The notes under the pieces were generated by a model. That model was not told the DNA's origin and searched no databases. It saw only the letters and a list, made by a program, of their open reading frames with translations. Both the position numbers and the translations under genes were made by a program. From assembly GCA_028023455.1 (NCBI GenBank), contig JAQFVV010000005.1, positions 23,312,001 to 23,376,000 of the forward strand: 64,000 bases of DNA, in the 5' to 3' direction. Each line of letters opens with the position of its first letter. Position 1 is the stretch's first letter. The stretch comes from Epiperipatus broadwayi. Lineage: Eukaryota; Animalia; Onychophora. This document shows, in pieces, positions 5,725 through 60,290 of the stretch.

Positions 5725-7641
5725 TCATTCACATTCTTGATTATCAAGTTCATTATCAGATTCTTCTTCATTTTGTATTTCATTCATCTCTTGTAATTTA
5801 ATCAAGTCTTCATTTGACAGAGGTTCTGAATGAGATTGCATTAGCTCATCAATATCTTCATCAGTGACGTCTAAATTTAAATCATTCATTATATTGACTA
5901 TTTCAGTTGTGATATCTTCAAGAGTTTCTTCAATGTCCATAGAAGCATTCATCATTTTTCCAACAACTTTTGATGGTGAATCTCTTATTTCAGCCCATGC
6001 ATCACCAATAATATTTATTGCATTCCATATATTATAACTTTTCCAAAAATATCTTAATGTAGGTCCACTTTCCTTGTCAATTGCCTTGATTGTTTGAATC
6101 ATTAATCTTCTCATATAATATCGCTTAAAAATAGCTATCACAGCTTGATCCATAGGTTGTAATTTACTTGTGGTATTGAAAGCAATAAACACAACATTAA
6201 CTTCTGGATATAAATTTTGCAGGGATTTTGGATGTCCAGGGGAATTGTTTAAGAGCAATAGTGTTTTAAATGGTAAATTATTCTCACTACAATATTGCCT
6301 AATAGAAGGCAGAAAATGATGTGAGAACCAATCATGAAAAAGCTGTGCAGTAGCCTAGGCTTTAGTATTTGATTTCCAAATATTGGAAGCATTCTTTTAT
6401 CTTTCCTTTCAATGCTCTAGGATTTTCTGTCTAATAAATTAGCATTGGCTTCAATTTAAAATCACCAGCTAATTACCCTCAAGAGACAATGTTAATCTGT
6501 TTTTAGAATATTTATGCCCAGGTGCAACTGATTATTCCTTTGTATGTGCAGGCATCTTTTTCCAAAATAATCCTGTCTCATCTACATTGAAGACTAGGCA
6601 TGGAAAATAAGCTCCATCTTTAATGATATTTGAGAAAGTGGAAATAAATTCACTGGCAGCTTTTTTATCTGCACTGGCACCTTCCCCAGTACATTTAATA
6701 TTATGTAAAGAATATCTCATTTTAAATTTGTGAAACCAGCCATTGTTTGCTACAAATTCAACAGCAGTCTTCTTTTAATTCTTTCTTCCAATCTTCATGC
6801 AAACTAAGAGCCTTAGCTTGAATAATTTATAAACTCACTGGAATGCCTTATTTGATGTTGAGCTTCAATTCATAAAGCCAAAGATTTCTCCATTTCATTC
6901 ATTACTCTGCCATGTCTTTTTGAAACAATCTTTGAAGAAATATTTCCATTAACATATTCCTTAATTTTGTTCTTGTTTTTCACAACTGTATATATTGTTG
7001 ATTGGTTTAAATTACATGAAGCAAAAGATTCACCATTTTCAAAATGTCTAATTATATCCATTTTTGTCTAGACCATTTGGGATTTACGAGACCTTGATTT
7101 CTTTTTGGCTGTATCAATACTGCTGTTTTTCTGTTTCTCACTCGTTTTTAATTAATAAGAATGAAAAAAATTCACCAAAACAGAAATATATATAGTGTAT
7201 ATGTAACTAATCACGCTCACAAACTACTTTTGAAAACAAGTGCTAATCAAAACGAGCCTGTTCATGACAGTCTGTGAAGATATTAAAAATAAAAGTAATT
7301 AATGTCATAAGATTTACTGTATTTTATATAAGTTCTTATTGTTCTTTAAAATATACTTTTAATTATTTTCTAAATTCCAAAGTTTAGAAATCTTTCTTTA
7401 GAAAAAATTCAATTACGAATCAGTTTTTTTTATCAGATACTGTAAATTTGTAGCGTTAATTACTAAAAGGAATTTTTTAACTATTAAAGTATTAAAATAC
7501 TGTACAATTTTGAATATCCATGTATATAGCACTAATTATATACAAAAGTATGTGCATAGTTAAAGATCTAAAATCCAAAAGTGATTACGTAATAGCGAAA
7601 TGTTTTATAACTCGAAGTGTTCGTAACTAGAGAACTGCCTG
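5725..7641 (-). mobile_element. Dead Tigger/pogo-family DNA transposon (CENP-B-type HTH plus DDE_1 transposase, frameshifted)
   Basis: Broken ORFs 6870-7061 (HTH), 6532-6720 (FNVDETGLFWKKMP) and 5725-6258 (LLNNSPGHP with the expected D changed to N; QPMDQAVIAIFKRYY). A Tigger-like terminus TA|CAGGCAGTTCTCTAGTTACGAAC reads on the minus strand from 7641. The other TIR was not found. Confidence 0.9.
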
Positions 7642-15260: not shown

Positions 15261-16224
15261 AATAAATTGGTTTTGAGGTTGTGGATATAAATTAATGTTT
15301 AATTTTAATAATCATTTTTTATATAAAATTGTTAAATAAAAAGTGTTACATAAGATTAGGACAAATCTTATATCTTCAACTTATATATGATCTAAATTCC
15401 AGTAATGTAAGGGGATTTGTTGTTTTATTATGTAACTAATATTTACTCAGGCAATAAACTTAAATTTGAGATACTAGAATAAATTAAGAAGTAACATTAG
15501 ATGATCAAGTATTAGAAATTTAGTCATAAGATCAACCAATTTATCTAAATGTTGTGATTATGGCATTGTACCTGTAGTTATATGTTGGACTATTTCCATA
15601 ACATATTTGAATTATTAAATGTTTTTTAAAAAAATTCAAACTTTATACTAATTTAATAACATATAGGTTAATATATAACACATCTTTTCAAATATTAGTA
15701 TTGTCTCTCTTCAAGTTTTCTTGACCTGATCAGCAATAGTACTAGCATTTAAATTGAACTGATGATCTTTATATTTGGGAATAACTAAGATGATGTTTTA
15801 ATCAATTAGTCTATCAAAAGCAACATTCTAATTAAATTTTATCTACTTTATCTGTAAATTTTATTTTTTTCTCACTGTGAATATTCTTGTCCCCTCCCCC
15901 CCAAGTTAATGTAGAAAACATATAGAGACATTGGTCTCATGGCACACAACACACAACATAGTAGTGTGAATGTGTATATATATATTTAAAGCTTGAAAGA
16001 AAAAAAAAATGATTACAGACAACATTTTTGCATACTTTTATTTAAAATATGCATTCAGGAATGTCTAGAAGTAATGATTAAATAATAATTTTGGTATTTT
16101 AAAGTGCTATAAATTATTTAAAATCAAATATTTGTGGAAAACATTTTTGTTTAAAGAATTAAAACAATTTTTTTTTTAATTATTATTATTATAATGGATG
16201 TAAATTGAAAAGCAGAATGATGTA

Positions 16225-17032
16225 TCACATGATCACTCTCTCTTATACTAACACAATTGTTTATAAACAAAGCAAAACTGTCCGTACAGTAATGCCAACC
16301 AGAGTAATCAATGGATGCCAGAAGGCTTGTGCATAAAATCCCTATCTAATGCCTACTCATCCAATATCGCCAGACTAGTTTCTGGCTTGTGGCCTGATAT
16401 GCACAAGCCTTCTGGCATCCATTGATTACTCTGATCTAATGCCTACTCATCCAATATTCCCAGACCACTTTCTGGCTTGTGGCCTGCTAAGGGATATTGG
16501 ATGAGTAGGCATTAGATAGGGACTTTATGCACAAGCCTTCTTGCATCCATAGGTTACTCTGATTGGCACAGGGTGGCACTACTGTATGGAGAGTTTGTGC
16601 TAGTATGAGATGGTGATCATGTGATGCTTAATGGTTTAACACTAATCCTGCCTAATAGGATAGTGGTGGCTATGGTTGTTAAAGAGCCAAAGACCACAAA
16701 TGTATGGGTGCTGAACTGAGTTCAGACCCATATGACTATATAAGCTAATGAGCTTAGATTGAAAATATTTTTGTATTTTCAATCTCATAGTTTTATAGTT
16801 AAGTAGAGATAATAGGTGGTTGCTGGAGGGTTGCATTAGATCCTAAGATCTAGGTGCAGTGCTCTCAGATCCAAAGCTCCTTACTGACGACGGCCACAAG
16901 CCAGAAACTAATCTGGGGATATTGGATGAGCAGGCATTAGATAGGGTTTTTATCCACAAGCCTTCTGGCATCCATTGATTACTCTGGTTGGCACAGTATG
17001 GCACTACTGTGTGGAGAATTTTGCATTGTTTA
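16225..17032. mobile_element. Family A hammerhead-bearing element, copy 1 (multiply inverted; plus-strand part longer than one monomer)
   Basis: TSD cagaatgatgta at 16213-16224 and 17033-17044. Minus/plus/minus/plus mosaic with switches near 16395, 16435 and 16487. The plus segment repeats gggatattggatgag at 16491 and 16916 (period 425). Confidence 0.9.
16878..16919 (+). ncRNA. Family A minimal hammerhead motif, partly decayed
   Basis: tcctta-CTGACGA-c-GGC cacaa GCC-a-GAAA-ctaATC-tgggga. The core is intact, but stem III has a G>A change (ACTAAT rather than ACTAGT). Confidence 0.65.
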
Positions 17033-20000
17033 CAGAATGATGTAATTAAATTTTTTTTTTTTTATTAATCAAGATGGAAAAAAAATTAATTATCTGTTTT
17101 TCAGAGAAATTATGCAGGTATATTGTGTGTAGAAGCCAGTTAAAAAGAACTGTCTAGTCAATCTCCATGTTGGTCTAGTTGAACTTCTACAGAAGTAGGG
17201 ACACCTTACCTGGTTGCAGTTCATCAAATTACTGAAACCAGCATTAATGTAACTACATCATGGACAAATCTTGAAATGCCAGTGCTATATTATATTCATA
17301 TAGGGTGCTTCATATATGCATGGGACGCAGAAAAAAAATTAGTCTGCTGTATATATACTTAAAGTGCATGCAAGAGATCTATTTCATGAACAAAGATATA
17401 AAGCACAGATGGAAGAAATTAGCTGGCGAGAAGACTATATACTGCTAATGACATATCATTTAAATTTGGTAAATTAACAAGTTTTATTTCTGTATACTGT
17501 TCAGCAAAAAATATATATATAATTATCCTATACAAGATTCTCTACTATAATGATGGATTCTAAAAGTAAACACATTTTTGAATCTGACTATTCAAATAGT
17601 GAAAAGAAAAATATTTTTTCGAAGAAATAAGACCAGAAAAATTTTGAATTTTTGAAAAAGTTATAGTGGACTGAAACTGATCAATCTTTTTTTTTCTTAA
17701 TTACAAATGCAACTCCAAATTTGATATAGTTGAAAGTAATTTTAAATGCAAATTTAAAATTAATAATTAAAAATATTTTACTGCGTGCTGTAATTTTATT
17801 TGTGTTATTGTGAAAATTATTGTATAACGCATGGTGTGTGAGTGCATTGCTATAAGCCACACGTATCAATATTCATGTATTATAATAAAATAATTATTAG
17901 CTTAATAATTATTGAAATATTTTGTACTATAATACAGACACATTTGTGTGCTTATAAATGTGGATGAATGTGTAACCTGTAAACTTATAATGATATATCT
18001 AAATTATATTGTTCTTTTTTTTTTCAATCTATAACATATTCACAAATATTTGTAAGTTAAAATCAGAATCATGTCTTTATAATTTGATTTTATTATTTAT
18101 TTCTAATAAATAAATTTTGTTAATCACTGCTTTAAGTTATTTAATAATAGAATAGTTTTATATATGTGAATTTTCTCTTGTTCATAATCACAAAGATCAC
18201 CTTTAAAGTCCACTCATTTTATGACAATTACTATTTTATTAGATGGCCAGAACGCTCAGTGTATCTGAAGGACCAGAGCATTAATAATGATCAGCATTGA
18301 TAGAAGAATGATCTCAGCACTTTTGATGAATCATTTTTATAGTTATTGATTGCTTATATATGATGCCCTATACTTGGCATTGACTTGCTAGGTGAGGATT
18401 AGCCTAGATTTTACTGTATTACTTGAAAATTCCAGTCGCAAGGATGATAATTGACTATTTGATATTTGCTGGTGATGTTATGTTTATAACTTATTTGATT
18501 ATGCTCTTTTTTTTTCTTTATGGGGATAATTTACATCTCCCTTGATCTACCCATGATTACTTCATATTCCATACCTTTACAATATATTGATGCAACTAGC
18601 TGTGCCACCAAAAAATGATCAAAAGAGTACAAAGGAATGATAAGAGTGGGGGGAAATTATGTCCTAATTAGAAAATAGAAGACCATGCATCTACCAATAA
18701 ATATATCTTCAATTTGAAAATACAAGAATAATAAGCAAAGGAGATAAGATATAAAAAAAAGAAAATTTTAAAAGGCTGTTTATGTGAGAATAGCAAATAA
18801 CTCCATAAGTCAACCTAGTTTGACACTCTATAATGTTTGAAAACAATTCATTAACTCTGCCTTGAAATTAAAAAAAAAAATATGGACGATTCTCATAGAC
18901 AGGCATATAGAATTTCAACAGACTGTTGTTGCCTTTGATAGAATAGTTAGTTGTTAAAACATCACTTTGAATACAATATTCATGTATCGAAAGATAGACA
19001 GATTGATTACTATGAAGCCGGCAACATCTGAAGAAAAGAAAATACCACTCAAAACATTATATAGTGACTGTGTTTTATTACTAACAGTTTAAATAACTTT
19101 TAATTTATTTTTTCTCAAAATATTTTAGTCCAACATACAGCAAAAATTTGCCATAAAAATATATTAAATAATAATACTCAACAAATTGTGGTGCAAATAT
19201 GTTTGCAATGTATGTAAACAAACTAAAATCAGTTTTAAAGTATTAACTTATAAAAAGTGAATATTATATACATAAACATTAATTTACTTAAATATATATT
19301 GACTTTTTTTAATCATAAAAATGTTATATAATATCAACATATACCACTTAATTCTCTGCCCAAAGACAAGTTGAAATAACTACATAATAGATTCACTTGA
19401 TCAATGTCAGTAGCGGTTTAAAGCTATATGTAAAATAATGAAGATTCTTAATCATTAAGCTATATAATAACATTTAACACAGTCCAAAATTTTTCAGGAA
19501 TCTTGCAATAGCCAATTTAGTAACAAATTTAAGCATCAAAGTGTTTGAAAAATCAGGAAATATATATTCTGTAAACATTCAATCATGCTAAAATGGAATT
19601 GTGTCAAGCTCTTTGGCTTATAGATACCTAATTTATCAAATCCATTAATAATTAATTACTGAAGCTTTTCAAAATTAAAAGCTATATAATAATCAATAAA
19701 AGCTCATCAATATTTTCTATTACATGTCTTTCACAACTTTATTCCTTGAATAGTAAAAAATCAATATAAAGGTTTAATAAACTAATGATCAGTTTCTCAA
19801 GCTAATGCGCTTTATGAATCACTTTTATGTATTATCTCAATTTCAAAAAACCCTTGCATATAATAAAATTATTACTTTAATATGCATGTATTTTATATAG
19901 AAACCTATTTATTTTAATTGCAATAAATGTAAAAATTGAGATTTCACAGAGAACAGGGGAATAACTACAGTTACATCTAGAATTCATTAAATATATATAC

Positions 20001-22319
20001 ACACACATACACAATAAGACATACATATCCTTAAAAATTATATTTTAAAAATATTTGATATATGAATAAAAATTAAAAATGCACAGACAATTTGCAATAA
20101 AAATAGATATGCAGCTATATACTACAGAAACATTCACTACAACGAATATATATATATAAGGCATATAATTTATCTTTTCAGCAGCATTTAAAACTTCAAC
20201 TTTATATAGCAAAAACAGTTCTTTAGGACTGTACTAGAAAAAATAAAACAATTTCCTTTCACCTTCGATATTTTCAAATGTCAACATATTCTCTTCATGC
20301 ACCTCATAACTTTCCTAAAGTTGGAAGACTTAGTAATAAACAACTTTATTAATCCAGATTTTTAAAAAAATCAACATCCTATTCATTTTTATTAAAAAAA
20401 TATAATTTAATGATTCTGTTTATTCTGCCATCTATTATCAACTTTCACATTTTTTTTTACAAAAAAGAAAGTTTATTTTTTAAAATAATAAACTGATTTG
20501 TCATTCTGGCAATGTGTAGGTGAGAAAATGTATAACTACCCAGCAAGAATTCCTTCCAATTAATATTTTTTTCCCAAAATGGGGAGTACTCTAATCACTG
20601 AGCCAGTAAATTTTAACTGTGAACAATATGTGCAAATATATATTGGTGTGGGCAAATATATATGCGTAAGTATGAAAAAAAGAGAAGTAAATATATATAC
20701 CTGAAGTAAAAAGCTTTCCCTTCATTTTCATGGTCATGGATTTAAATGAGAAAATTTTTTATACTTATACTTATCTTGATCAATGAAGAATAAATAAAAG
20801 CACATATCAATGATGGCTTTGGAATTTAAGAATTCAGCTTACCAAAAGTAAATGTTTATGGTAAAATATTTACACCTAATCTATCTATAATTAAGTATAA
20901 TGAAATAATAGATGTGTTATGACTTTTTTTAAAACAGTGTTGCATTTAAAAATAAATAAGGATATAATAGTATTTTTTTAACAGTATTAATAATAATAAT
21001 TACATATTATTTTATGAAAAGAAACCTAAAATTACTTTGAATATTAATTTAATATAAATGTATTCAATAACAAGACAACAAAAAACCTGAATAAGTAAAA
21101 TGTTTTCTCTGATCTCTGCTAATGATTGTCTTAAAAGTAAATATTAATTGCCTTTTTTTTTACATTTTAAAAAAAAATTAATTTATAATTATCAGCACAA
21201 AATTTGAAATGCACTAAAATTATTTTTAAGGAAGAATTATTCTATTGTATTTACAGAAACTAAAAATTGGAAATAAAAGACTAAAATAACATTCTTAGCA
21301 CTATATTTAAATTGCTTAATCCTATTAGATGAATCATATCTAGTAAAAATAGAATTTAATGTAATTTTCATTATCAAATTGCATGAAAATATAAGTATTT
21401 CTCTTAATCACAGAATTCATCTTTCCAAATGTAGCATATAAACAAAAACAAGACAGTGCCATTAGTATTATAAAAATTGATGAGACAGGTACATAATCAA
21501 TACTAGTGTTAGTTAAACTAAATCGATATTGACCTTGTTATTAAAGTTCAAAGGATTCAATTAAGTTATTATTTTATTATGAAGTTCTGCTGTAAAGCTT
21601 GTCTGCCTATAATTAGTAAATACTTAATTTATAATGCTCTAAATTGTTGCCAGATTGATGATGAGTTCAAAATCTCAAGATATTTCATATACATCTATTG
21701 CATTATATTAAGATAATTTTGGCATCTGTTCAGAAAATATAAAAAAAATTATTAGCAATAACAATTAGAATGCAAATTTAATGCCCTCTTTACATAGACA
21801 AACTATGGGCAGAAGGATATTATTAATGTTATATATATATATATAGAAGATATCACCATTGATTATATCTCACCAATTTCAGAAAGACATCATTAATTAT
21901 AACTTTTTCACTAATAAAAGCAAATTACCATATGAATAATGTTAGCATTTTATTGGGACAATAAAATTACATCTGATATCTACTTTTACACATCACATAT
22001 AATAGCACTTAAATATTGTATGAGTATTAATACTATACTGCACATCTATTTATTTGAAATAAATACGCATTAATATTATAAAATGAAATTATATGAATTT
22101 AAAAAAAAAAAAATTGTACTTCTTTAATAAGAAAAACTTGGCAGGAATTAAATGATTGCTAATGATTTAAAAAAAAAAAAACAACAATCAAATATTGTCT
22201 AATTTTTGAACATTATTGAAATAAATTTCTTAACAGAACTGTAGCACTTTTATATTACATTGTGTTCAAATAGAAAAACCCAATAAGAAATAGGTTTGTT
22301 TTTTAATAATTAATCATGA

Positions 22320-22608
22320 ACCACTAAACATCACATGATCACTATCTCATACTAGCACATAATTGTTATTAAACAATTCAAAACAAAGCAAAACTCTCCA
22401 TATAGAGATCCTAAGATCTAGGTGCAGTGCTCTCAGATCCAAGGCTCCTCACTGATGAAGGCCACAAGCCAGAAACTAGTCTGGGGATATTGGATGAGTA
22501 GACACTAGATAGGGATTTTATGCACAAGCCTTCTGGCATCCATTGATTGCTCTTGTTAGCACAAGATGGCACTACTATATGGAGAGTTTTGCTTTGTTTT
22601 GAATTGTT
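22320..22608. mobile_element. Family A hammerhead-bearing element, copy 2
   Basis: TSD taattaatcatga at 22307-22319 and 22609-22621. An inverted terminal segment of about 85 bp is followed by a plus-strand ribozyme and tail. Confidence 0.92.
22446..22487 (+). ncRNA. Family A minimal type I hammerhead ribozyme motif (intact), predicted cleavage 3' of C22481
   Basis: Stem I TCCTCA/TGGGGA; core CTGATGA at 22452-22458; stem II GGC-cacaa-GCC flanked by an A on each side; GAAA; palindromic stem III ACTAGT; GUC triplet. Stem I extends as ATCCAA/TTGGAT. Confidence 0.85.
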
Positions 22609-23199
22609 TAATTAATCATGATTTCACATTTTGTAAAAAGTTATTGTAGCCTTTGGATTATTGGATCCATCTTTATTTCAATCAAAATTTCATTGTCTTC
22701 CATCAGTTTTTACTTCGCCAATCATCGCTTGATTCATTTCTTCGAATTTGGCAATTGTTATCACAAAAAAAATGCAATTCTAACAAATCTCAGCTATCAA
22801 TTTCAATCACATCATGAAGTATCCTTTTCACTAGTTACAATTTCCACATTCATGACATAACAGTTAACCTTTCAAATCTGTATATAGTTTTTGGATATAA
22901 ATATTTTTAGCACTGGTTCTTTAAGCAGTAAGTTAGAAGCACCCAAGTTTAGCCATATAATCTACCATATGTTTTAAGTTATATTATAAAGTAAGTCTCC
23001 ACCATTATAATATATATATTTATCTATATTTTTTTGTCCAAAGACAGGTAAAGTGCAATCAATTGATAATCCTTGATTATCATTAGTAGTCATTTGCCAT
23101 TACTTGCTAATAAAGATTATTTTTAACATTTTAAGCTATATTATACTTAAAGGTGTATGTAATTTGGTATATAAAAAGATTGTAGAAGTAATTGGATTT

Positions 23200-24460
23200 G
23201 GTAAATATTGTATAAAAAAATTCTGAACAAATTATTAATAAGTTAAGGAATATTAAGTTAAATAGAAATGGAATGATTGTTTCATTTGATATTGAGAAAA
23301 TGTACCAAAGTGTACCTAGAAAGGATAGTACAGAAATAGTTATGACTAAATTGAAAATATGTAATGATTTGTCAGAGGATTGGATATATATTATTTATGA
23401 AACATTACTAATGGTAGATGATTCTTTGTATTTTAAATATAAGGAAGAATTTTGGAGTATAGAAAAGGGATGGGTTATAGGGTGTTCAATAAGTGGAATA
23501 TTATCATCAGTAGTTGTAGGTAGTATACAGGAGGGTGTAGAAGATGAGTTTATAAAGAATAAAGGAATTATAGAATATTATAGGTATGTGGATATTATTG
23601 TTATTGGAAATGGTATATTCAAAATTTTTAATGAACTGAATAATAATAAATATAAAATTAGGTTTACAGTGAAGAAAGAGATAAATGGATTAAAATACTT
23701 AGATATTTTTGTGAAGAGAGGAATGATGAATGAAATAGTGGTAAAGCATTATATTAAAGATAAAAAATTTAGAGGTTTAATTTATCTAAAATCATATCAT
23801 CCATTATGTCAAAAAGTAGGGGTTTTAAAGGGATTTAAGTTAAAGAATGATAAACTTACATTAGATAAGAACGAGACATATGAGCAAAAATTAGAAGTAG
23901 AGAATGATTATATTAATATAGGATATAAAAGAAAAGTAATTAAAACAATTTTTAGAAATCAAAATATAAATAGTAGAAATAAGTATGATGAGAAGTGGAT
24001 GTTTATTCGTATTCAAGGGATGTCTACAAAAAATTAGTAAGAGAGAAGTTACCAAATGACATAAGAATAGCTTGGGAAAATAATAAGTCTTTGGGTAGAT
24101 GGTTATGTAATACAAATAAGATAGATAGTATGAATAGTAAGGGAGAATGGTTTATAAAATTAAATGTGGAAGTTGTAATAAGGTATATATATGAGACAGG
24201 ACGGATGATAAGTGACAGAGGGAATGAGCATGATTGAGCGATTAATAGGAAAGATATTAGATCAGATCCATAAATATATTATTTAAATACTGGTCATAAA
24301 ATGGAGTGTGAGAAGAATATTAGTTATAAAACATATAAAAGATTACTGAAAAAGGATATGTTATGAAACTTTATACATTCAGAAAAAATTTGGACAGATG
24401 TGTAAATATAATTAAAGGTCAAGCAAGATTAGATGGAAAATGGGCATTATTAGATAATTG
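23200..24460 (+). mobile_element. Decayed Penelope-like element (RT plus C-terminal GIY-YIG endonuclease)
   Basis: ORF 23273-24037 has SFDIEKMYQSVP, GWVIGCSISGILS, YYRYVD(I) and FTV..EINGLKYLDI. From 24147 a frameshifted GIY-YIG reads MVYKIKCGSCNKVYI..ETGRMISDRGNEH, then LNTGH. Boundaries approximate. Confidence 0.85.
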
Positions 24461-25428: not shown

Positions 25429-26466
25429 GATAAGCCACCTATACATAAAACATTTTTTATATTCTCTTCTCAAAGACAGGCTAAATGCAAACAAATGATA
25501 ATACTTGATTAACATCAATGATCATTTGCCATTGTTTTGATGTATATTTTTGAGCTATATTATAAAAAATAAAATCTACATTATAAAATATGTATCTATG
25601 GTCTCTATCAAATTACATACAACCAAGTGATAACACTTAATAGTTAGTGGTCGTTTGCTATTGCTTGCTACCATTAACTCATTTTAATACATTTTGAGCT
25701 ATAAAATATAAGGATCTATATACTCTGTCTAAAGACAGATTAATTCAATAGCTTACCATTGATTCGCTCTAACATATAACTTCCTAGTTTATTAGTGTTT
25801 CGCACATTGATTTTAATTTATCCAAAAAAAAAAAAAGATCTTCATTATTTAGTTGATCCCCTTCCCCAAGTTTTATCCAGTTCTATTTTTCGAAGTGTAG
25901 AAATTATCTCTATCTTGAAAAACATCATCTTGACAAATGTACTATTTCTAGATCAATTGAGACAGATTAAAGGAAAACGTTTGTTTCTTTTTTTAATGGA
26001 AAGGGGGGGGGGGTCAACAAGTTATTCTTTAAAACTTGTCAGCTAATGAATTTTCATTCATTTTATCAACGAAAGATTTATACGTTTTTTTTTAACAAAA
26101 TAATGCATTTTTATAAGGAAAGTTGATTTTAGATTTATTAAATAAAAAATGACAGCGATTAAATAAAAAAATTTATCATATTTTACACATTAAAATTTCA
26201 TCAAAAAAATTGTGATTAAAATAAATATTACTTATATATAAACTTGTAAAAATCAGCATCAAACAACCACCGTAGGAAGAAAAATTTACTACTCACCAAA
26301 AGTAAGCATTACCTGACGACATCTGGTGGAGAGAAAAATCATAAGTCTGGAATATGTTGATTTCTATTTCTAAAAATTGGTTTCATACTCATAAAAATAG
26401 ATTAATGTATTTTTCTTTATCTGAATTTCCATTCTCCATTGTGAAATATCATAAATATACTCTTTT

Positions 26467-27137
26467 AAACATCACATGACTACCACCTCTTATGCTTGTG
26501 TATAACTGTTGTTAAAACAGGCAAAACTCACAATATATATTGCCAAACAGCATGCTAGAGTAATCAATGGATATTGGATGAGTAGGCACTAGATGGGGAT
26601 TTTATGCACAAGCCTTCTAGCATCCATTGATTACTCTAGCTTGCTGTGTGTGGCAATATATATAGTGAGTTCTGCCTGTTTTAACAACAGTTATACACAA
26701 GCATAAGAGGTGGTAGTCATGTGATGTTTATTGGCTTAAAACCAATCCTGCCTAATAGGATAGTGGTGGCTATGGTTATTAAAGAACCAACGACACCAAA
26801 ATGTATGAGTACTGAACTGGATTCAGACCCATATGGCTATATAAGCTAATGGGCTTGGATTGAAAACATTAAGGTGTTTTCAGTTTAAGACTCATAGTTT
26901 TGTAGTTAAATGGAGATAAAAGGTGGTTGCTGGAGAGTTGCATTAGATCCTAAGATCTAGGTGCAGTGCTCTCAGATCCAAGGCTCCTCAATGACGAAGG
27001 CCATAAGCCAGAAACTAGCCTGGGGATATTGGATGAGTAGGCACTAGATGGGGATTTTATGCACAAGCCTTCTGGCATCCATTGATTACTCTAGCTTGCT
27101 GTGTGTGGCAATATGTATAGTGAGTTTTGCCTGTTTT
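26467..27137. mobile_element. Family A hammerhead-bearing element, copy 3 (complete monomer plus redundancy)
   Basis: TSD taaatatactctttt at 26452-26466 and 27138-27152. 26467-26572 is inverted relative to about 26613-26729. ggatattggatgagtaggcac repeats at 26569 and 27024 (period 455). The ribozyme at 26985-27026 is mutated (ATGACGA core, GCC triplet). Confidence 0.92.
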
Positions 27138-27299
27138 TAAATATACTCTTTTCATGCATAAAGAATAATTTAATTTTACATATATGATACTAATTTTATT
27201 CCCTTCGTTTTGACTCATAATACATCTAATAAAATTTCTTCCTGTATTTTTATCCATAGATAATTTACTATTACTTCCAAAGCAGTCATATATTTTTGG

Positions 27300-40869: not shown

Positions 40870-41226
40870 CGCAACTAACATTGGCATTAAAGCAAAAAAG
40901 TGGGCATGATTTTTGGGAATCTGATTTGTGTGAATTTCTAAACTGAATCACCCCCATGTTTTTATTTTTAAAAGCTGAAGAAATTTATTTTTTTTACTTT
41001 ATAATGCACTTTTTACTTTTTGGTGCATTTATATTTATATATAAGGTTTAGTGTTTTGTTTTTAATTTGTTGCAAATTACATTTAATTTACAATTGTGGT
41101 CATTTTAAATTGAAAAAAATTGAAGTGTATTTGTAATTGATATTTAACATATTATAAAATGTAATATAATAGAATATAAAATGTTTAATCTCTGAAGAAA
41201 GCTGCAGATTCACTGAAAAAAGTTAG

Positions 41227-42022
41227 TAAAACAGGCAAAACTCTCCATACAGTAGCGCCACTCAGTGCAGGCCAGAGTTGCATTAGATCCTAAGATCTAG
41301 GTGCAGTGCAAGGCTCCTCACTGACAAAGGCCACAAGCCAGAAACTAGTCTGGGGATATTGGATGAATAGGCACTAGATAGGGATTTTATGCACAAGAAG
41401 TAAAATGTGCCAAATTAAAAATTTAACCCATTATTGATAGATACTTTGAGATATTATTATTGTAAATATATACACATATTCAAAGGAAATCGGAAAGTGC
41501 AAATAATTTTATTCCAAAATAAACTTATCTAATTATAAACCTTTTTTTTTTTTTTAGAAGTATCTTGCCTAAAGTTATATGAATTAATGTTTTCATCATC
41601 TTTTTATTGCTCAGTTTGTATAATTTTTTACCTGTTTTTTTTTTTTCTTTTTAAAACAATTTTATGCCCTAACTTTTTTCAAACATCACATGATCACTAT
41701 TTCTTATGCTTGCTCATAACTGTTATTAAAACAGGCAAAACTCTCCATACAGTAGTGCCACTCAGTGCAAGTCAGAGTTGCACTAGATTCTAAGATCTAG
41801 GTGCAGTGCTCTCAGATCCAAGGCTCATCACTGACAAAGGCCACAAGCCAGAAACTAGTCTGGGGATATTGGATGAGTAGGCACTAGATAGGAATTTTAT
41901 GCACAAGCCTTCTGGTATCCATTGATTACTCTGGCTTGCACTGAGTGGCATTACTGTATGGAGAGTTTTGCATGCTTTAATAAGTTATGAGCAAGCATAA
42001 GAAATGGTGATCATGTGATGTT
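41227..42022. mobile_element. Family A element, copy 4, with two ribozyme motifs and an internal inverted copy of the downstream flank
   Basis: TSD tgaaaaaagttag at 41214-41226 and 42023-42035. Hammerhead motifs at 41315-41356 and 41825-41866 both read CTGACAA. 41398-41777 is the reverse complement of about 41929-42314. Confidence 0.9.
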
Positions 42023-43133
42023 TGAAAAAAGTTAGGGCATAAAATTGTTTTAAAAAGAAAAAAAAAAAAAACAGGTAAAAAATTATACATTAAACTGAGC
42101 AATAAAAAGATGATGAAGACATTAATTCATATAATTTAGGCAAGATTCTTCTAAAAAAAAAAAAAAGATGTATAATTAGATAAGTTTATTTTGGAATAAA
42201 ATTATTTGCATTTTCCGATTTCCTTTAATTATATGTATATATTTACAATAATAATAATATCTCACAGTATCTATCAATAACGGGTTAAATTTTTAATTTG
42301 GTTCATTTTGCTTCTTTTTTTTTTTAATTTTTAGTTTTAATAATTATTTTCTTTTATTTAATTTGTATTCTTAGGAATTAAGGAATTGCTTAAGGGTTAT
42401 TACTCAAATATTTGTACAAATAAATTATACGATATTAACGAGTAATAAGATATAAAAAAAAAAAAAAAGTAAATGAAGGAAGAACAAATGAATACCTAAC
42501 AAATTCAGAAAACACGGATAAATAAATTGACAAAGCAAATAATTGTCACATCTAAGATATAATCTATACGTTCTATAACAAAACATAATTTTTGAAAATC
42601 TCATTAACAGCTCCATTAAAATACCTTTTAATAACGATAGCAGAGACATCTTAAAATGAAAATTCGTTTGTTATATTTATGCTGAATTTCTAAATATAAT
42701 ACTCAGTTCTGATAATTGTAGGCTTTTTGGTAAGAATATAGATTATAGTCAAACTCATATATTGTTAAAATATATTATTATGGATTCAAGACAAAATGGC
42801 AAAAGATGTAGGTAAGAGCCGCATCATTCGATAATAAAATTTCAGTTAAGAGTTAATCTATTGAGCCCTCAGTTACCTTTCAATTTAAATAAATTAAAAA
42901 TTATATTACCTGGCATTTTAAAAGAAACAAAAATTCTAATCATTTACTTATAAAATCAATGTATAATTAAAATTAATCCAATAATTTATTAATACTCTGG
43001 GAGGGAAAAGATGGGAAAAGGTGATAACGTAAATTATAATTTTCCAAACGTACATGCACTATCAAAAAAAAAAATTCTAACGATAAAACTATTTGCCACG
43101 CCGGCAATTTTTCCATATGCAAAGTTTACTTAC

Positions 43134-43574: not shown

Positions 43575-44501
43575 ATGGCCGCCCTGGTTGCTGATTATCA
43601 TGGATCTACTTCGGAATCCGACAGCGACGATTCTACAGAAAATCATGATTTAAGGTAGAAATTAATTGATTGATAGAATTTTTAATTTATGAACTTTACT
43701 AATTTTAGATTTTCTTTTTTGAGTGTTAGTTTTTAAACTAATTCCATGAAGTGCAAGTGTTTTTATATTATTATTTCTTTTTTCTTCAATCTAAGTTGTA
43801 GTATCAACCACTAAATGTTTTGATTATATTATTTTGCTCTTGTAAAGGAAGCGAATGTTTTTGTGATTAAATGTTTTTTTGCACCATGACTAGAGTACTG
43901 TTTGTATTTTTAATCGTTTGTTTTGTTTATTTATTGGCATGCTTGTCTGACGTCATTTTTCCTTTAATATAGATCTGCTAATGTTACCATATCAAGCGCA
44001 GGTTTCAATAATTCATCTTCAAATATGACTGAAGGAAAACATGAGAAGTTACCCTCGCCTAATTTTAACAATCTGAATGGCAAAATAAATTCTGTGTTTG
44101 CTAATCCATTCCGAGATGCAGAAGACGCTGAAAATTCCATATTGGAAAAACATGTCAAAATGACACCTAATGAAATTTTGGACAGCCAGGGTGGCAATCA
44201 AGTTTGTTGGAAATTTCGAAAAGGTAAATGCCGCTTCGGTCATAACTGTAAATTTTTGCATGACAATGATATTAGACGATTACCTGAACACACAGATGCC
44301 ACTTCACAAAATAATTCGAATTTTTATCAGTTAAATAATAGATCAATATTTCCAACTTGTTGTGGTGAAGATGAAGAAAATGAATCAATAAAAAAACGAA
44401 AGAAGGTTGGATTAAGTAATACTATTATACCTCCCAAAAAAGCTTTAAAGGCTTACCAGAATCAACAGAAAATCGAAAGACCATGGACTGTTGCTAAGTA
44501 A
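43575..44501 (+). CDS. Two-exon gene, join(43575..43654,43973..44501), encoding a 202-aa protein with one CCCH zinc finger
   Basis: Exon 1 reads MAALVADYHGSTSESDSDD...L, followed by an AG|gt donor at 43655. A ctgac branch-like site and a ttttcctttaatatag acceptor end at 43972. Splicing stays in frame with ORF 44025-44501, which contains CWKFRKGKCRFGHNCKFLH (C-x7-C-x5-C-x3-H) and a basic KKRKK patch. Confidence 0.88.
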
Positions 44502-44783: not shown

Positions 44784-47601
44784 TGTACATCTCTTTTCCT
44801 CACCGTATAAAGCAGGTTCTCTTTGAGGGGAGAGGGAGAAAGAGGCACGCACATTGTCTGTGATGTTAATATTCAAAATTTTAATGCTAATTTGTACCTC
44901 AATTTTAAATTTATTTCATGTGAATGTTTTTATCTGTTATATTCCTTTCATATTTTTTCTTTTTTTAATCTATAAAGTGTTGAAACTTTATTTCACATTT
45001 TCTACTTTTGTAAGGGGATGCAGATCTAATATATTTCGAATCTTTTCCCCCCACTACAATTTTTACGGGTCCATATTTTTAAATATACATATTATATTGA
45101 TTTGAGGTAAACCAAATATTATTAATTATTAAGATTAAAGTAAATACAAGAAAAAAAAAAAAAATTTAATTCGTTTTTGTAATGAAGAATTTCGATTTTA
45201 ACCATGAATTCATTTTTAATCACTTCTCAAAAGTTTTAAAGTAATTGTGGAAAACAAAATAAAAAATATAGACATAATTGTTATCCTGTATTATTCAAAC
45301 TTAAAAGTCCATTGCTGCTATTGTTGCTAATGCTAATTATCATGTTTCCAGATATGATTTGAAATATGTTTCTTTTTTACCTACTAGAATCTTTGTTTTA
45401 ATATATATATATATATAGTAGAACTTTATTCAGTTTCAATATCTTATATTTATTGCATTAGTTGAAAGGCAGTGCCAAAGCATTACAAATTAATGAAGCA
45501 ACTTAAAGTAATGACAGTTCAGTTCATGATGGGTCAAATGTTATTTATCAATCGTTGTTTTTTGATGGCTAGTTTCATCTGCCTCTTTTGTGTAGAAAAT
45601 TTAATATAAATTCGCTTATAAACATGTAAAATTATTTGAAAATTCAGCTTCTCTAACAAGTGAGATTTATGTTGATAATAGAGAGTCTTGAATCTAAACT
45701 TCTATTTTTTTTTCTGAAGATTATTTAGTCCATAAATACAAATACAAATCCAGTTTATAGCTATCAACTTTTTTTTTTTTTCATATTTACTGTATAATTA
45801 TGTATGTGCTTTCAAACTGGTTTATTGATTAGATATATATGTGGATAATAAAGTATAATCCAAAATTAAGTAGTTTCACATTGGTATTCATATATATATA
45901 TATTAGTGCCCATGCATTCTAATAGTATTTATTGAGATCTTATTATGTATATTAACAAATATACACACATTTTAAAATTCTTCATTTTTGTACTAGTACT
46001 CATATTTTTTTTGCTAACTTGATTTTTGAGATTCTAGACAGGATAAGGCTAGTATGTTTGTTAAAAAAACAAATATTCACTTAAAAATCACTTCTTCAAA
46101 GCTTAAAAGTATATATATGTGTGTGTAAATAATTATCTTTTAATGAATCAGAACTTCAAAAACTCCATTAAATTTAAGCACAAATTTTGTTTAAAGTTAG
46201 GTGGAAATATATTACAATGTAATGCTAATGCCAGTTGAGCTTTTTTATGTCATATGATAACTGTGGTCATGTGATAATTGTGGTCATTTTCAGATATACT
46301 GAGTCCAACAAACCTATTTTCAAAATTTGATTAATTTTTATTTATTTATTTATTTATTTATTGTATAAAACAATCTCTATAAAAATTAATTAACATATCA
46401 TTTCTTGTCTCTACTCCCAATATATGAGTATAAGCACTTAATCCTTATTTAAAAAGTTTGGGAAGTGCTGGGTCAGTTGTAATTATCAATTTCATTATTT
46501 ATATATTTTCTAATAAAAATTATAGATCCATCTGCCTTGAAAAGCTTAGGTGTTTTTATTATTATTATGTGAGTATCAACGCAGTAATACCAATTAGATC
46601 ATGCATAAGTCACCTAACTTATTTTATCTAATTAAAAAAAATTTATTGCATAAAATCATTGTTATTTTTTTTTACATTTCAGGACATTCTTATTATTATT
46701 TCTGATTTGTGTATTGTTTTTTACAATTATCTGTTAATCATTCCTGCAATTAGAAAATTTCTTTATTAATATTTTTTAATTAGTATTAACAGTTTTTTAT
46801 TGATAAATAGGCATTTATATTCCTATGTTTTAACTTGCTGTTTGTTATAATATAATTTTGTAGTATATTTTTAATGTTTTTTTTTTTTGTTTTTTTTTTG
46901 CATATTGGTAGAAATCAACTCATTATTAAAATTGTATTTTTTAATGCTAGATATGAAATAGGTTTTGCATTTTAGTATACTTGCAAATAATTAGGTCAGT
47001 ATTATTTCATCAATCTACTCGTTAAAAACATTCATAAAGTATTGCTTTCCACTGGGTAGTAGTGAACCTATTGTTTAGTTGTCTTGCAAAACGATATGTT
47101 CAATCATTACTGGTGAACGTTTGGGCAAAATAGTTTAGTTACCAAATTCAAAAAATGATTTAAATATATTATTTTACTAAAATTTATGTTTTGATTAAGT
47201 AAATCAAAACTTTTTTAAAGAATATTTTAAAATGGAAATATCTTTTACATTATTTATTTTGATTGTCCTCCCAACTATTGCAATCCAGATTTAATGATTA
47301 TTGATATACATGACTGTTTTTACTATTGAAATTATATTTAATTATAAATGAAACCCAGGAATGTTGTTTTCTTATAGTTGATTTGACAAGTTTGTTGACT
47401 GAGTGACATTTAGCTTTATTACTCAATAATTATACATTTTCTCAAATGGATTTACTGCAAATGTTATGCTGTCCATAAAATCATGAAAATTGCATTGAAG
47501 AAATGAAGAAAGACAGAATTCAGATTTTATAAATTTTTAATATAACTGTTTAGTATCTGATATTAATGTAATCCATTTGATTCCAAGGATATCAGAATGT
47601 T

Positions 47602-47918
47602 AAACCACTAAACATCACATGATCACTATCTCATACTAGCACATAATTGTTATTAAACAATTCAAAACAAAGCAAAACTCTCCATACAGTGCTTGTGCAT
47701 AAAATCCCTATCTAGTGCCTACTCATCCAATATCCCCAGACTAGTTTCTGGCTTGTGGCCTTCGTCAGTGAGGAGCCTTGGATCTGAGAGCACTGCACCT
47801 AGATCTTAGGCACTAGATCGGTATTTTATGCACAAGCCTTCTGGCATCCATTGATTGCTCTTGTTAGCACAAGATGGCATTACTGTAAGGAGAGTTTTGC
47901 TTTGTTTTGAATTGTTTA
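47602..47918. mobile_element. Family A element, copy 5
   Basis: TSD atatcagaatgtt at 47589-47601 and 47919-47931. The minus-strand body (with an internal deletion near 47690) runs to about 47810, followed by an inverted plus-strand tail. Confidence 0.92.
47733..47774 (-). ncRNA. Family A minimal hammerhead motif (intact), predicted cleavage between 47739 and 47738
   Basis: The minus strand reads TCCTCA-CTGACGA-a-GGC cacaa GCC-a-GAAA-CTAGTC-TGGGGA. Confidence 0.85.
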
Positions 47919-48647
47919 ATATCAGAATGTTCTTGATGACATTTTGTGAGTGGAAGACAATGGCATGTCTATTGAATAGAGAACCCATATAATCTATGTT
48001 TTTCATTTGCACTATCCAATGTTGTGATTCTGAGTATTAGGTTTGGTATCACTGAGATAAAAATGTTATAGTATACTATCTTTTAAAAAATGATGTCAAT
48101 TTTCTCATTTGTTTTGTGACATTAACACTTTGATTGGCATTTTCATGCCATATATCCATCAATAATTGATTCATTGAAGAGAATAAGTCCATAAATCATC
48201 TCACTTGACAGTGCTTTTAAATCGAGGATGGATTGGCAAAGAGAATCAGACCAATAAATAATTCTGAATATTATACACTTTCAGAATATGTATCTTGCAA
48301 AAATTATATTGAAACATTACAATTTAAAAATTGTAATATTATTTCATCACAGTTTCTATTTTATTTAGCTGGCTCGTCTCAGATGACATTAGTGTAAATT
48401 CCAAATATTGCTGGGTATGGTTTCTTGATCGATTTAATTTTGAAAATAAAAAAGAATGTTCACAGGAAACCTTTAAATAATATTGCAGGTTTAATTTTAA
48501 AAGACGAATAAATTATAATATGATTAATTAATTTTTTTATAGATCCAAAAATTTTAAATAATTTTAAAATTGTAATTAAAAAATGTATTGTTTTTTTAAA
48601 GAATTTGTTTCTCTATAAAAAAACATTTTTTCTCATGTGTCATAGAA

Positions 48648-55300: not shown

Positions 55301-56104
55301 GATAAATACTAAGATTATGACAAAAAAGATCATATAAAACAGCTAAATATATATTAATATACATAAGCCTTTGTCAGTATATAGTTTAGTACCTTTCCCA
55401 AATGTTAGAAAGGGCACTAAATCATGTGCCAAAAACTTTTTTTTATACAGTATATGATTAATATATATTTATATTAACTGTTTTTTTATATGATTTTTTT
55501 TGTTATTGTAATTTATATTGGAATTCATTATTTCCATTTTTGATGACTAAGATTATATGAGTCAAACGAAGAGTGCTAGTTTAGCATGAATTACATGTTG
55601 GAAGTCATTTATCTTTTTTGAATATCTTTATTCATGTTTCAAGAATGTTGGCAGAATGGAAGTTTTAAAATATATTTAAAAATATATATCACACAAAGAA
55701 AAACAGAGATGAATTTGAATTATTCCATGTGATTGTGTTTAATTAAAAGACAGATATATTAATATTTATTTTATATAGCATATGCACAATTAGCATGAAA
55801 GGCTGATATTTGACTGTAATATTTAAATAAGTAAATAACTCAGATGATATGGAACTGAATAGGAAGTAACTGAAGCTTCCAATGAATTATATCACATTTA
55901 ATCATCCATCAACCCAGAAGTCAGACCAACCTCTCGGACCATAGATACATTAGAAACATACATTTTGCCAAGCAATTCATATAGCACATATTAACGATTG
56001 AACTTCATATATACATTATTTCTAGAAAATCTTTAAACTTATTTTTTTTATTATTATTAATTACAATTTTATCACATTACAAAAACGTGAAATGGATAAA
56101 TGAT

Positions 56105-56149
56105 CTCCAAAATGTGTATTTTGTGCTGAACCAGCACTCATCAGTTGGG
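56105..56149 (-). ncRNA. Family B hammerhead motif, probably inactivated (GAAA>AAAA)
   Basis: The minus strand reads cccaa-CTGATGA-GTGCTG gtt CAGCAC-AAAA-tacacatt-ttgga. Confidence 0.65.
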
Positions 56150-58280
56150 CTGGATTACAATCTCTTATACATATCTTCATCATTTGTTCAGTATATATCT
56201 AGATAGCAAATTACTATAGTTTAATTGACAAGTTTAAATTTTCTGCAGTACACATTAATATAAACGACTGTAATGGAAATATATTAATAACTGTTACTAA
56301 TCATTTATCAACCTAGAAATTATCACAAGCTCAAATAATTATTTTTTTATATAAGTCCTATTTAATGGATAATGTATCTGCAGTGGCATAGAGGTATCAA
56401 CAGCTGATTTCCTTGCCGATGTTGACACTGATGATAAGTTTCATACTTTTCACACAAGTTGGGGACAGTATCCACTTTTAACAACTTATAGAGCAGTGTA
56501 CAATCATTGTACTACATTCTGAGGATCAAAGGAGAGCTGTACTTTCAACAATCTCTAAATATGAAATGAATTTTCAGTTATATGTAAATAAATAACTCAG
56601 ATGATATGTAACTGAACAGGAAGTAATGGAAACTTCCACTGAGTTATATCATGTTTGCAATCCTATCACAACTATCCATTTACCCATAAATCAGACCATA
56701 GATACATTAGAAACATTTTGTCAAGTAATTCATATAGCACATGTTACAATTCAACTTCATATACATATTATTTTTAAAAAAACTGCAAACTTAATTTTTT
56801 TTTTTTATTCATTACAAATCTATCACACATTACTGAAATATATGATCAAAGATATGTGAAAAGGGTAAATGATTCCCAAGATGTGCATTTGGTACTGAAC
56901 CAGCACTTATCAGTTGGCTCAGATCACAATACGTTCATCATTTGTTCGGTACATATATGTAAATAATAAGTTACTATAATTTAATTGACAGGTTTCAAAT
57001 TTTCTGCAGCACAATATAAATCATTGTAATGGAAATATATTAATAACTGTTATTAATGATTTATCAATCTAGAAATTATCACTAGTTTAAATAAGTTTTT
57101 ATATGTACAGTATGTCATATTTAATGGATAATGTTTCTGCAGTGGCATAGAGGTATCAATACCTGATTTCCTTGCCCATGTTGATAGTGTTGATAAGTTT
57201 CATAACCACTTTTAACACCTTGTAGAGGGATGTACAGAGTTTTAGTTTCAATAGCTTTTAAATATGAAATGAAAATTCAATTATAATATATGTAAATAAG
57301 TAAATAACTCAGATGATATGTAACTGAACGGGAAATAACTGAAGCTTCCAATGAGATAAATATATATAAAACTTGAGCTAGCAATAATTTCTAGTTTGAA
57401 AAATGATTAGTAAGTTATTAATACATTTCCATTACAGTGGTTTATATTAATGTACTGCAGAAAATTTGAAACCTGTCAATTAAACTATAGTAATTTGCTA
57501 TCTAGATATACTGAATAAATGATGAAGGTATGTGTAAGAGATTGTGATTCGACCAAATCAGTGCTGGTTCAGCACAAAATGTGCATCTTGGGGATCATTT
57601 ACCCTTTTCATATTTGATCATATGTTTCAGTAATGTGTGATAGAATTGTAAATTTTTCTAAAAATAGTGCATATACGAAATTGAATTGTAATGTGCTATA
57701 TGAATTGCTTGACAAAATATGTGTTTCTAATGTATCTATGGTCTGATAGATTGATCTGACTTTTGGACTGATGGATGGTTCTGATAGGATTGCAAATGTG
57801 ATATAACTCTTTGGAAGCTTCAGTTACATATCATCTAAGTTATTTACATATATTAGAATTGAATTTTTATTTCATATTTAGAGATTGTTGAAACTAAAGA
57901 TTTGCTTTGATTCTCTGAATATAGTATAATGATTGTATACCCTTCTACAAGGTGTTAAAATTGGTACTATTCCCACCTTGTGTGAAAAGTGTGAAACTTG
58001 TCAATATCAACATGGGCAATAAAATCAGGTGTTAATACCTCTATGCCACTGCAAATACATTATCCATTAAATAGGACTTATAAAAAAAAAACCTTATTTA
58101 AGTGTGATAATTTCTAATTTGATAAATGATTAGTAACAGTTACTAATATATTTATGTTATAGTGGTTGACATTAATGTTGTACTGTAGACAATTTGAAAC
58201 CTGTCAATTAAACTATAGTAATTTGCTATCTATATATATATTGAACAAATGTGAAGATATATGTGAGATTGTGATATGAG

Positions 58281-58324
58281 TCAACTGATGAGTACTGGTT
58301 CAGTATGAAATACGCATCTTGGGG
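58281..58324 (+). ncRNA. Family B minimal type I hammerhead motif (best-preserved copy), predicted cleavage 3' of C58318
   Basis: tcaa-CTGATGA-GTACTG gtt CAGTAT-GAAA-TACGCATC-ttgggg. The consensus stem III is the palindrome ATGCGCAT, with an AUC triplet. Confidence 0.8.
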
Positions 58325-59744
58325 ATCATTTATCCTTTTCACATATCTTTGATCATGTATTTCAGTAATGTGAGATAGAATTGTAATTGATAAAAAAAAA
58401 AAATTAAGTTTGAAGTTTCTTTAGAAATAATGGGTATATGTGATTGAATTGTAACGTGTATTATATGAATGTTACTAGTGTAGCTATTGTCTGAGAGGTT
58501 GAACTGACTTCTGGTCAGATTGATGGTTGTGATAGGATTGCAAACATGATATAACTCATTGGAAGTTTTTTTAATATTTGTTTTCTCCTTTTTTTTCTAC
58601 ACTATGTCATTATTCTTATTATCACTAATACAAGATTTTTTATTTTCTTGTAGCTTATTGTTTGAACATAAGTTTTATTTTCTTAAAAAATCTTATTTTA
58701 CATTTGACTTCATTATGTATATTTTGTTATTCAACAAATTTGTTTTAATATTTTGCAGTGATTTATTAATAGTTCAATTTTTTTTGTCAAAAGGTAATCT
58801 TATTTCTGCCATTATTAAATTGTGATCCAAATCTCTAATAGCACATGATGAATACATGCATTCCTAATATTATATCTAAAACATTATGCAATTTACTTGA
58901 AACCTATTCTTATTATCAGAAGATTTTCATTTGGGAATTCTTTCATGATTTTAAAAGCTATGTGTTAATTATTTCAATATTATTTTTGCTTCGAAATTTT
59001 ATATGTTCATACTTATTATATACTCTGATAATCTCTAATTAAATATTTCCTGACTTACTAAGTATCTCCATTACAAGTAATTTTGCTTTCTTTCATTGTG
59101 TTGTGTAACATGTATGAATAAACTTCTGTGAGCAATAAAACATTACAAACTTTGATTAAATGAGTCAAATGCCTCGATGAAATTAATAAAAGCAGTATAT
59201 AAATCACATCTTTGCTTGTGACACTTTTGTTTTTGTATTTTGATAGCACCAAAAACCATATCTACAGTGTTTCTGGATTCTCTAAAACCATTTGCATTGC
59301 GGTTTTAGAGAATTAAATATCTAATGGTACTTAATCTATGACTGCAAACAACACATTGAACAAAGACACTGAAATTGTTTTTGCTCTAATAGTTAACAAA
59401 TTATTGAATGTTCAATTGCTTGGCTAGTCGTGTGGCATTTGAAAAATGAAAATGACAAGTTGGACTGAAATTCAGGAATTGAACTGCAATTCAGGAATCG
59501 CTAGCTTTGGGATACATCTTTTTATTACTGCATTAAACAATATGGAATAACATTTTTAAACTAGATTGGCCCGCGTTCAAATTCAATCATAGATGTGGCA
59601 TACAGAAGCACAATGAGGCTATTCATATAAAATAATACTATAATTAATTGGTTTAGATCATGTAAAATTTGAGCATCCCAATGCAGATGAGCATTTAATA
59701 GTTTTATTCAATTAGTCTAAAAGGAGTTTTTATTCTAGTGAGAT

Positions 59745-60290
59745 AACCACTAAACATCACATGATCACAATTCCTTATGCTTTCTCATAACTGGTATTAA
59801 AACAGGCAAAACTCTTCATACAGTAGTGCTACTCAGTGCAAACCAGAGTAATCAATGGATGCCAGAAAGCTTGTGCATATAATCCCTATCTAGTGCCTAC
59901 TCAGCCAATATTCCCAGATTAGTTTCTTCCTTGTAGCTTTTATTAGTGAGGAGCCTTGAATCTGAGAACACTGAGTTCATATCTATATGATTATATAAGC
60001 TAATGAGCTTGGATTGAAAATATCATTGTGTTTTCAATTTGAAACTCATAGTTTTGTGGTTAAGTAGAGATAAAAGGTGGCTGCTGGGGATTGCATTAGA
60101 CCCTAAGATTAGATGCAGTGCTCTCAGATCTAAGGCTCCTCACTGATGAAAGCCACAAGCTAAAAACTAGTCTGGGAATATTGGATGAGTAGGCGCTAGA
60201 TAGGGATTTTATGCACAAACCTTAATGGCATACATTGATTACTCTGGCTTGTACTGAGTGGCACTACTGTATGGAGAGTTTTGCCTGTTT
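59745..60290. mobile_element. Family A element, copy 6
   Basis: TSD tattctagtgaga at 59731-59743 and 60291-60303. The minus-strand part (decayed ribozyme near 59912-59953) runs to about 59972, then the plus-strand part carries a ribozyme motif at 60137-60178. Confidence 0.92.

Follow-up and report, generated by a model that had tools for sequence, protein, structure and literature searches.

Most hammerhead ribozymes of animals have a helix I of 6 bp, a helix II of 4 bp and a helix III of only 1-2 bp, the last being capped by a palindromic loop of 2-4 nt, and they are active as dimers (PMC4209133). Imperfect helices are known among them. The axolotl motif HHR_Amex2, for instance, cleaves as a dimer although the base of its helix II is mismatched (PMC7229834). 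Hammerhead motifs also occur near the 3′ end of Penelope-like elements (PLEs), the insertions of which show strong 5′ truncation, partial tandems that give rise to pseudo-LTRs and an adjacent inverted, 5′-truncated copy, as well as a 30-40 bp extension at one end only and TSDs of variable length (PMC8557442). In PLEs that encode an endonuclease, the function of the hammerhead was still called unclear in 2021 (PMC8557442). It has been proposed that the non-LTR retrozymes of animals derive from PLEs and are non-autonomous (Cervera & de la Pena 2020, PMC7229834; Li, Clavereau & Pollet 2026, 10.64898/2026.07.22.740005).

Here we describe a repeat, family A, that makes up approximately 5% of the window, by which we mean the whole 64-kb stretch of DNA that was analysed. 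The original prediction was of a non-coding, retrozyme-like mobile element carrying a type I hammerhead of the dimer type. Both the anatomy of the insertions and the layout of the motif supported this reading.

The repeat unit and its insertions

The unit of family A was 455 nt long with a GC content of 40%. This period was recovered at 26566-27137, and the 455-nt unit was used as a ruler, with position 1 set at the base after the predicted cut. BLAST against the window and a multiple alignment revealed a shared core of approximately 150 nt, the surroundings of which were variable. The element had been claimed to possess no ORF, and this holds: in a trimer of the unit, read as a circle, the longest stop-free stretch was 54 codons.

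When placed on the ruler and read base by base, the copies resolved into six independent insertions, each bounded by an exact TSD of 12-16 bp, with a different sequence in each case (Table 1). Every insertion began on the left with an inverted, 5′-truncated arm, the outer end of which was at unit position ~165-180. The direct arms on the right ended at unit position ~117-127, with one exception at ~170. Measured on the unit, the outer end of the inverted arm extended ~45-60 nt beyond the 3′ end of the direct arm, forming a one-sided tail. The inner junctions between the arms were different in every insertion (about 98/380, 57/4, 72/369, 18/384 and 399/251), and the inverted repeats were therefore created at insertion and are not fixed termini. 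The apparent terminal inverted repeats are a product of Penelope-style insertion and do not belong to the rod of the ribozyme. Insertions 1 and 3 contained more than one unit in direct order, that is, a partial tandem or pseudo-LTR, and these 1.25-unit copies were the only tandem content of the window. The insertion anatomy of PLEs was found in all six insertions, and family A is very probably a non-coding retroelement of the PLE style.

Table 1. Positions of the family A insertions, the parts of the hammerhead motif at 22446-22487 and the PLE remnant within the window
Feature	Position	Strand	Remarks
Insertion 1, longer than one unit	16225-17032	+	intact motif 16878-16919; TSD CAGAATGATGTA at 16213-16224 and 17033-17044
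Insertion 1, nested inverted segments	16225-16485		
Truncated 3′ half of motif	16356-16394	-	within inverted part of insertion 1
Truncated 3′ half of motif, second	16446-16484	-	within inverted part of insertion 1
Insertion 1, direct arm	from 16491	+	begins at +3 relative to the predicted cut, after 5 filler bases
Insertion 2	22320-22608	+	inverted 5′ arm 22320-22405, direct arm 22406-22608
Insertion 2, TSD TAATTAATCATGA	22307-22319 and 22609-22621		
Motif, helix I 5′ strand	22446-22451	+	
Motif, CUGAUGA	22452-22458	+	
Motif, unpaired A after A9	22459	+	
Motif, helix II hairpin	22460-22470	+	
Motif, unpaired A before GAAA	22471	+	
Motif, GAAA	22472-22475	+	
Motif, loop 3 CUAG	22476-22479	+	
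Motif, U16.1 and C17	22480-22481	+	
Motif, helix I 3′ strand	22482-22487	+	
PLE ORF, decayed and 5′-truncated	23216-24234	+	600 bp from insertion 2
PLE remnant, RT-like motifs	23216-24034	+	stop-free frame
PLE remnant, GIY-YIG-like motif	23992-24234	+	overlapping frame
Insertion 3	26467-27137	+	inverted arm 26467-26572, followed by 1.25 copies of the 455-nt unit; motif 26985-27026
Insertion 3, start of direct arm	26570-26573		+4 to +7 of the predicted cut; 3-nt overlap with inverted arm
Insertion 3, TSD of 15 bp	26452-26466 and 27138-27152		
Insertion 4/5, composite	41227-42022	+	TSD of 13 bp at 41214-41226 and 42023-42035
Insertion 4/5, partial twin-arm copy	41227-41397		motif 41315-41356
Insertion 4/5, inverted copy of downstream flank	41398-41680		
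Insertion 4/5, twin-arm copy	41681-42022		motif 41825-41866
Insertion 6	47602-47918	+	inverted arm 47602-47810, direct arm 47807-47918; TSD ATATCAGAATGTT at 47589-47601 and 47919-47931
Insertion 6, intact motif	47733-47774	-	carried by inverted arm
Insertion 7	59744-60291	+	inverted arm 59744-59973, direct arm 59970-60291
Insertion 7, decayed motif	about 59911-59952	-	within inverted arm
Insertion 7, motif	60137-60178		in direct arm; A-U in helix II
Insertion 7, TSD of 12-16 bp	within 59728-59743 and 60288-60303		

Three further observations concern the insertion sites. The inverted segment inside the composite insertion 4/5 was a copy of ~283 bp of host DNA situated downstream of the insertion (42026-42310). 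A single TSD encloses the insertion together with this flank copy, an arrangement suggestive of strand switching onto the target in the course of insertion. The direct arm was on the plus strand in six out of six insertions, an outcome expected by chance once in 32, and this shared orientation may reflect a bias relative to a host transcription unit. In four of the insertions (2, 3, 4/5 and 7) the TSD opened with 1-4 bases identical to the T-rich 3′ end of the element (TGTTT...), and the bases at 22609, 27138-27139, 42023-42024 and 60288-60291 were consequently ambiguous between the two. Such identity would be in keeping with a template whose 3′ end anneals to the nicked target.

Layout and copies of the hammerhead motif

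The motif at 22446-22487, re-read on the plus strand, had the sequence first described for it (TCCTCA / CTGATGA / A GGC CACAA GCC A / GAAA / CTAG / TC / TGGGGA). All the essential core bases were present in the consensus of family A (C3 U4 G5 A6 N7 G8 A9, G12 A13 A14, A15.1-U16.1 and H17), and cleavage is predicted after C17, between 22481 and 22482. The topology was that of type I, with helix I open and helices II and III capped. In helix I, a 3/2-nt internal loop separated the first 6 bp from 6 bp more. Helix II (GGC/GCC) had only 3 bp and the loop CACAA, and helix III was reduced to one A-U pair with the palindromic tetraloop CUAG as its cap. In place of a G10.1-C11.1 pair adjoining A9 and G12, an A was found on each side (22459 and 22471), leaving A·A at the base of helix II. 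Judged by its sequence, this layout is the published animal type I pattern (PMC4209133, PMC7229834).

A search of the window for the core pattern, permitting at most three mismatches, detected eight sites (16884, 22452, 26991, 41321, 41831, 47739 on the minus strand, 59917 on the minus strand and 60143). Shuffled sequences were expected to yield 0.20 sites, and none of 100 shuffles reached eight. These sites and the two isolated 3′ halves in insertion 1 bore out the original count, in which seven motif copies were complete, one was decayed and two were truncated. Under a strict descriptor the catalytic core was intact in only three of the seven complete copies (16878, 22446 and, on the minus strand, 47733). 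The copy at 26985 carried the core changes C3>A and U16.1>C, those at 41315 and 41825 each carried G8>A, and the copy at 60137 carried G12>A. As none of the window copies has two intact sense ribozymes flanking it, they can be considered “dead on arrival”. Since the eight copies are not independent evidence, chance was estimated for a single repeat consensus. A relaxed hammerhead descriptor matched random sequence of family A composition 0.15-0.45 times per Mb per strand, and the chance of a match in one 455-nt consensus was ~1e-4 to 4e-4.

Covariance models, folding and conservation

The original prediction had proposed Infernal and the Rfam hammerhead models as a check, and for family A this check was negative. 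A scan of the whole window at the gathering score returned no hammerhead match for the family, and at E values up to 10 the motif was still unmatched, whether submitted within 351 nt or within 62 nt. The motif was thus recognised neither by RF00163 nor by the other covariance models of the hammerhead clan. A scan for the exact pattern of the motif gave 0 matches in metagenome contigs, and a full-text literature search for strings of the motif found no paper.

The motif was located at the tip of an imperfect hairpin of ~35 bp. The long rod said to prolong helix I is real within the unit: a 125-nt domain had an MFE of -41.9 kcal/mol (z = -2.6), and helices I and II were both present in the MFE structure. 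For a single 59-nt domain, the MFE structure was an inactive alternative fold (-16.2 kcal/mol). When two 59-nt domains were folded together the MFE structure was a double hammerhead, at -36.0 kcal/mol versus 2 x -16.2 kcal/mol. The predicted double hammerhead has a helix III of 6 bp (ACUAGU/ACUAGU), and in these models helix III would be stable only in the dimer.

Covariation within the window was limited. In helices I and II, 94% of the cells were paired, with one double change in 8 sequences. This change, from GGC/GCC to AGC/GCT at 60151/60161, had been put forward as compensatory; it is present, but it was not statistically significant, as 142 out of 500 shuffles equalled it. Both arms of insertion 7 had A at 10.2 and the direct arm had U at 11.2, so the A-U pair probably already existed in the template RNA.

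Sequencing runs provided a larger sample. The sequences of these runs are contigs, and their libraries were only guessed to be RNA; no pile-up of molecule ends was reported in them. Thousands of contigs contained the core of the motif, the runs they came from bearing the labels of at least ten organisms, and the consensus of these thousands of copies kept all the essential core bases. C3, G12 and U16.1 were each present in more than 90% of the depth in the contig populations. In two of four runs (X1 and X4) the by far most variable place within the motif was N7, the sole free position of the core, but in the runs X9 and X10 other motif positions varied more. Within helix II, variation in four runs was confined to positions 10.2 (G>A) and 11.2 (C>T), at 7-20% each. 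Conservation of the core in the contig runs was no higher than that of the flanks.

Comparison with retrozymes, Penelope-like elements and amphibian hammerheads

Family A resembles the non-LTR retrozymes in its non-coding unit of a few hundred nucleotides, its low GC content, its single type I hammerhead per unit and its long TSDs. At 455 nt, the unit is at the upper end of the retrozyme range of 170-400 nt (repeats of 150-450 bp). Unlike retrozymes, which form long tandem arrays, family A is represented here by dispersed inverted-plus-direct insertions and by 1.25-unit copies.

As in the pseudo-LTR hammerheads of PLEs, the motif is situated 120-175 nt from the 3′ end (PMC4209133; PMC8557442). 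The palindromic minimal helix III and the unpaired base after A9 are also shared with PLE hammerheads (PMC4209133). Likewise, the 5′ truncation, partial tandems, adjacent inverted 5′ copy, one-sided tail and variable TSDs are those of PLE insertions (PMC8557442), although the tail is somewhat longer in family A (~45-60 nt against 30-40). Family A differs from PLEs in lacking an RT/EN ORF. Its helices are similar to those of the canonical animal type and not to the “min-HHR” of PLEs, in which helix II has 7-8 bp and helix I 4-5 bp. We found no description of the additional A before G12 in the texts on PLE and animal hammerheads that we compared.

Among amphibian hammerheads, the axolotl HHR_Amex1 also has a single-bp helix III with a palindromic tetraloop cap (PMC7229834). 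The mismatch at the base of helix II is U·U in HHR_Amex2 and A·A in family A (PMC7229834). A double-hammerhead conformation is expected to be needed in family A, as it is in the amphibian motifs. The amphibian satellite or retrozyme elements are unrelated in sequence and form long tandem arrays, and their cleavage as dimers has been demonstrated by experiment, that of family A being predicted. By most testable criteria family A is an animal non-LTR retrozyme, a kind of element that has already been described. The dispersed twin-arm copies, the rather long unit and the A·A at the base of helix II still leave it within this known kind.

Mode of mobilization

We consider it quite probable that family A is a non-autonomous animal “non-LTR retrozyme”, most likely copied in trans by the RT and GIY-YIG endonuclease of a PLE. 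In transcripts of a master copy, two motifs would fold into a double hammerhead, pairing through the 6-bp ACUAGU/ACUAGU helix instead of the 1 bp and palindromic CUAG loop of a lone helix III. The RNA would be cut after C17, yielding an RNA with U1.1 as its 5′ end. Staggered nicks would then be the sites at which this linear RNA, or an RNA circularised by a ligase, is reverse-transcribed, and both 5′ truncation and strand switching would be frequent.

In both of the copies that were longer than a unit (insertions 1 and 3), the direct arm began 2-6 nt past the predicted cut. Starts of this kind would be expected of a template whose 5′ end is set by the ribozyme. Provided that the start of a full-length copy corresponds to the 5′ end of its template RNA, the probability of finding it so close to the cut (within 6 nt, in a unit of 455 nt) is roughly 0.02, a value that was obtained post hoc and from two loci. 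We suggest, tentatively, that these full-length starts might be a genomic record of cleavage in vivo that defines the 5′ end of a PLE-type template. The hammerhead itself probably is, or was, active. Joints at +3 to +6 of the cut, present in the contigs of two runs, were also considered as support and were rejected, being no more frequent than expected by chance.

A decayed PLE ORF was located in the vicinity of insertion 2. Its nearest Atlas clusters combined HTH_animal, RVT_1 and GIY-YIG, whereas a word-index search with the ORF gave no match and no called gene is recorded for it. This remnant was rejected as the autonomous partner, having no sequence in common with family A, and it therefore shows only that PLEs live in this genome. 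No autonomous PLE with the 3′ end of family A was found in the 64-kb window.

Alternative explanations

Several features of family A are reminiscent of MITEs, namely its short length, its lack of coding capacity, its hairpin folding and the presence of inverted repeats and TSDs at its flanks. Under such an explanation family A would descend from a DNA transposon by deletion, a transposase would move it by way of its terminal inverted repeats, and the hammerhead motif would be present in the internal sequence by chance. In copies such as 22320-22608 and 41681-42022, the inverted termini measure 38-100 nt and the folds are near-perfect hairpins (z = -9 to -10). However, the inverted repeats are made anew in each insertion, with different arm lengths and inner junctions, and the two ends are asymmetrical. 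The TSDs are long (12-16 bp), variable and without a common sequence, two copies contain at least 1.25 units as a direct partial tandem, and one insertion holds an inverted copy of its own flank. The variable arms and TSDs, the tandems and the flank copy do not fit cut-and-paste transposition, and all of them fit reverse transcription of the PLE type. With neither constant termini nor a fixed TSD length, we rejected the MITE explanation on insertion anatomy and regard it as hardly tenable. Mobilization by a LINE, in the manner of a SINE and with twin priming generating the 5′ inversions, would not require a PLE. TSDs of 12-16 bp, 5′ truncation and 5′ inversion, as found in family A, also arise in L1-type target-primed reverse transcription. 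We nevertheless judge it very improbable, as no copy ends in a poly(A) or simple-repeat 3′ tail and the sole RT remnant in the window is PLE-like, while the hallmarks of PLEs include partial tandems, a tail of ~45-60 nt on one side only and a hammerhead close to the 3′ end.

A further alternative accepts the dependence on PLEs and questions the ribozyme. The hammerhead-like motif could be vestigial, or a passenger, with no useful cleavage and no role in mobility, and the element would be recognised solely via its 3′ region. This would agree with the lack of an Rfam match even at E values up to 10, with a helix II of 3 bp that has A·A at its base, with a helix III of just 1 bp and with the absence of significant covariation in the window. 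The literature offers precedents, since the minimal hammerheads of PLEs cleave poorly in vitro (PMC4209133), PLE clades that are free of hammerheads proliferate very well, and hammerheads have been floated as mere parasites of PLEs (PMC8557442). On the other hand, a consensus of thousands of copies has kept each essential core base, and the commonest variant within the motif is at the free position N7 in two out of four runs (X1 and X4). The probable existence of the helix II A-U pair of insertion 7 in the template RNA, and the start of full-length copies 2-6 nt past the predicted cut, also speak against a passenger. On balance we find a motif without function unlikely.

Other elements in the window

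A second and older hammerhead repeat, family B, was found at 55817-58568. Its units of ~750 nt occurred in both orientations and were 78-81% identical. The motif of family B at 58279-58324 on the plus strand (also given as 58281-58322) had a helix II of 6 bp. Serving as a control for the Rfam scans of family A, it was a weak match to Hammerhead_1 (16 bits, E = 0.15), the gathering score of that model being 34. On the minus strand, an ORF fragment at 5725-6258 encoded a DDE_1 (pogo-type) transposase domain (Pfam E = 3e-14). An ORF of 158 aa at 44025-44501 on the plus strand contained a CCCH zinc finger and a Torus domain. Its relatives, with 30-45% identity, were scattered over molluscs, insects, nemerteans and echinoderms, and by its sequence this ORF may be part of a mobile element.

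Implications

With ~5% of the window and thousands of contigs from several related organisms, family A is a major genome component, which is at risk of being mistaken for a MITE or a satellite by annotation pipelines. It adds one more well-resolved example that ties the hammerhead repeats of animals to Penelope-type insertion. The many young and differently truncated copies offer a cheap test of whether the ribozyme sets the end of the template RNA. In a genome this rich in young copies, insertion end-points alone could settle the question.
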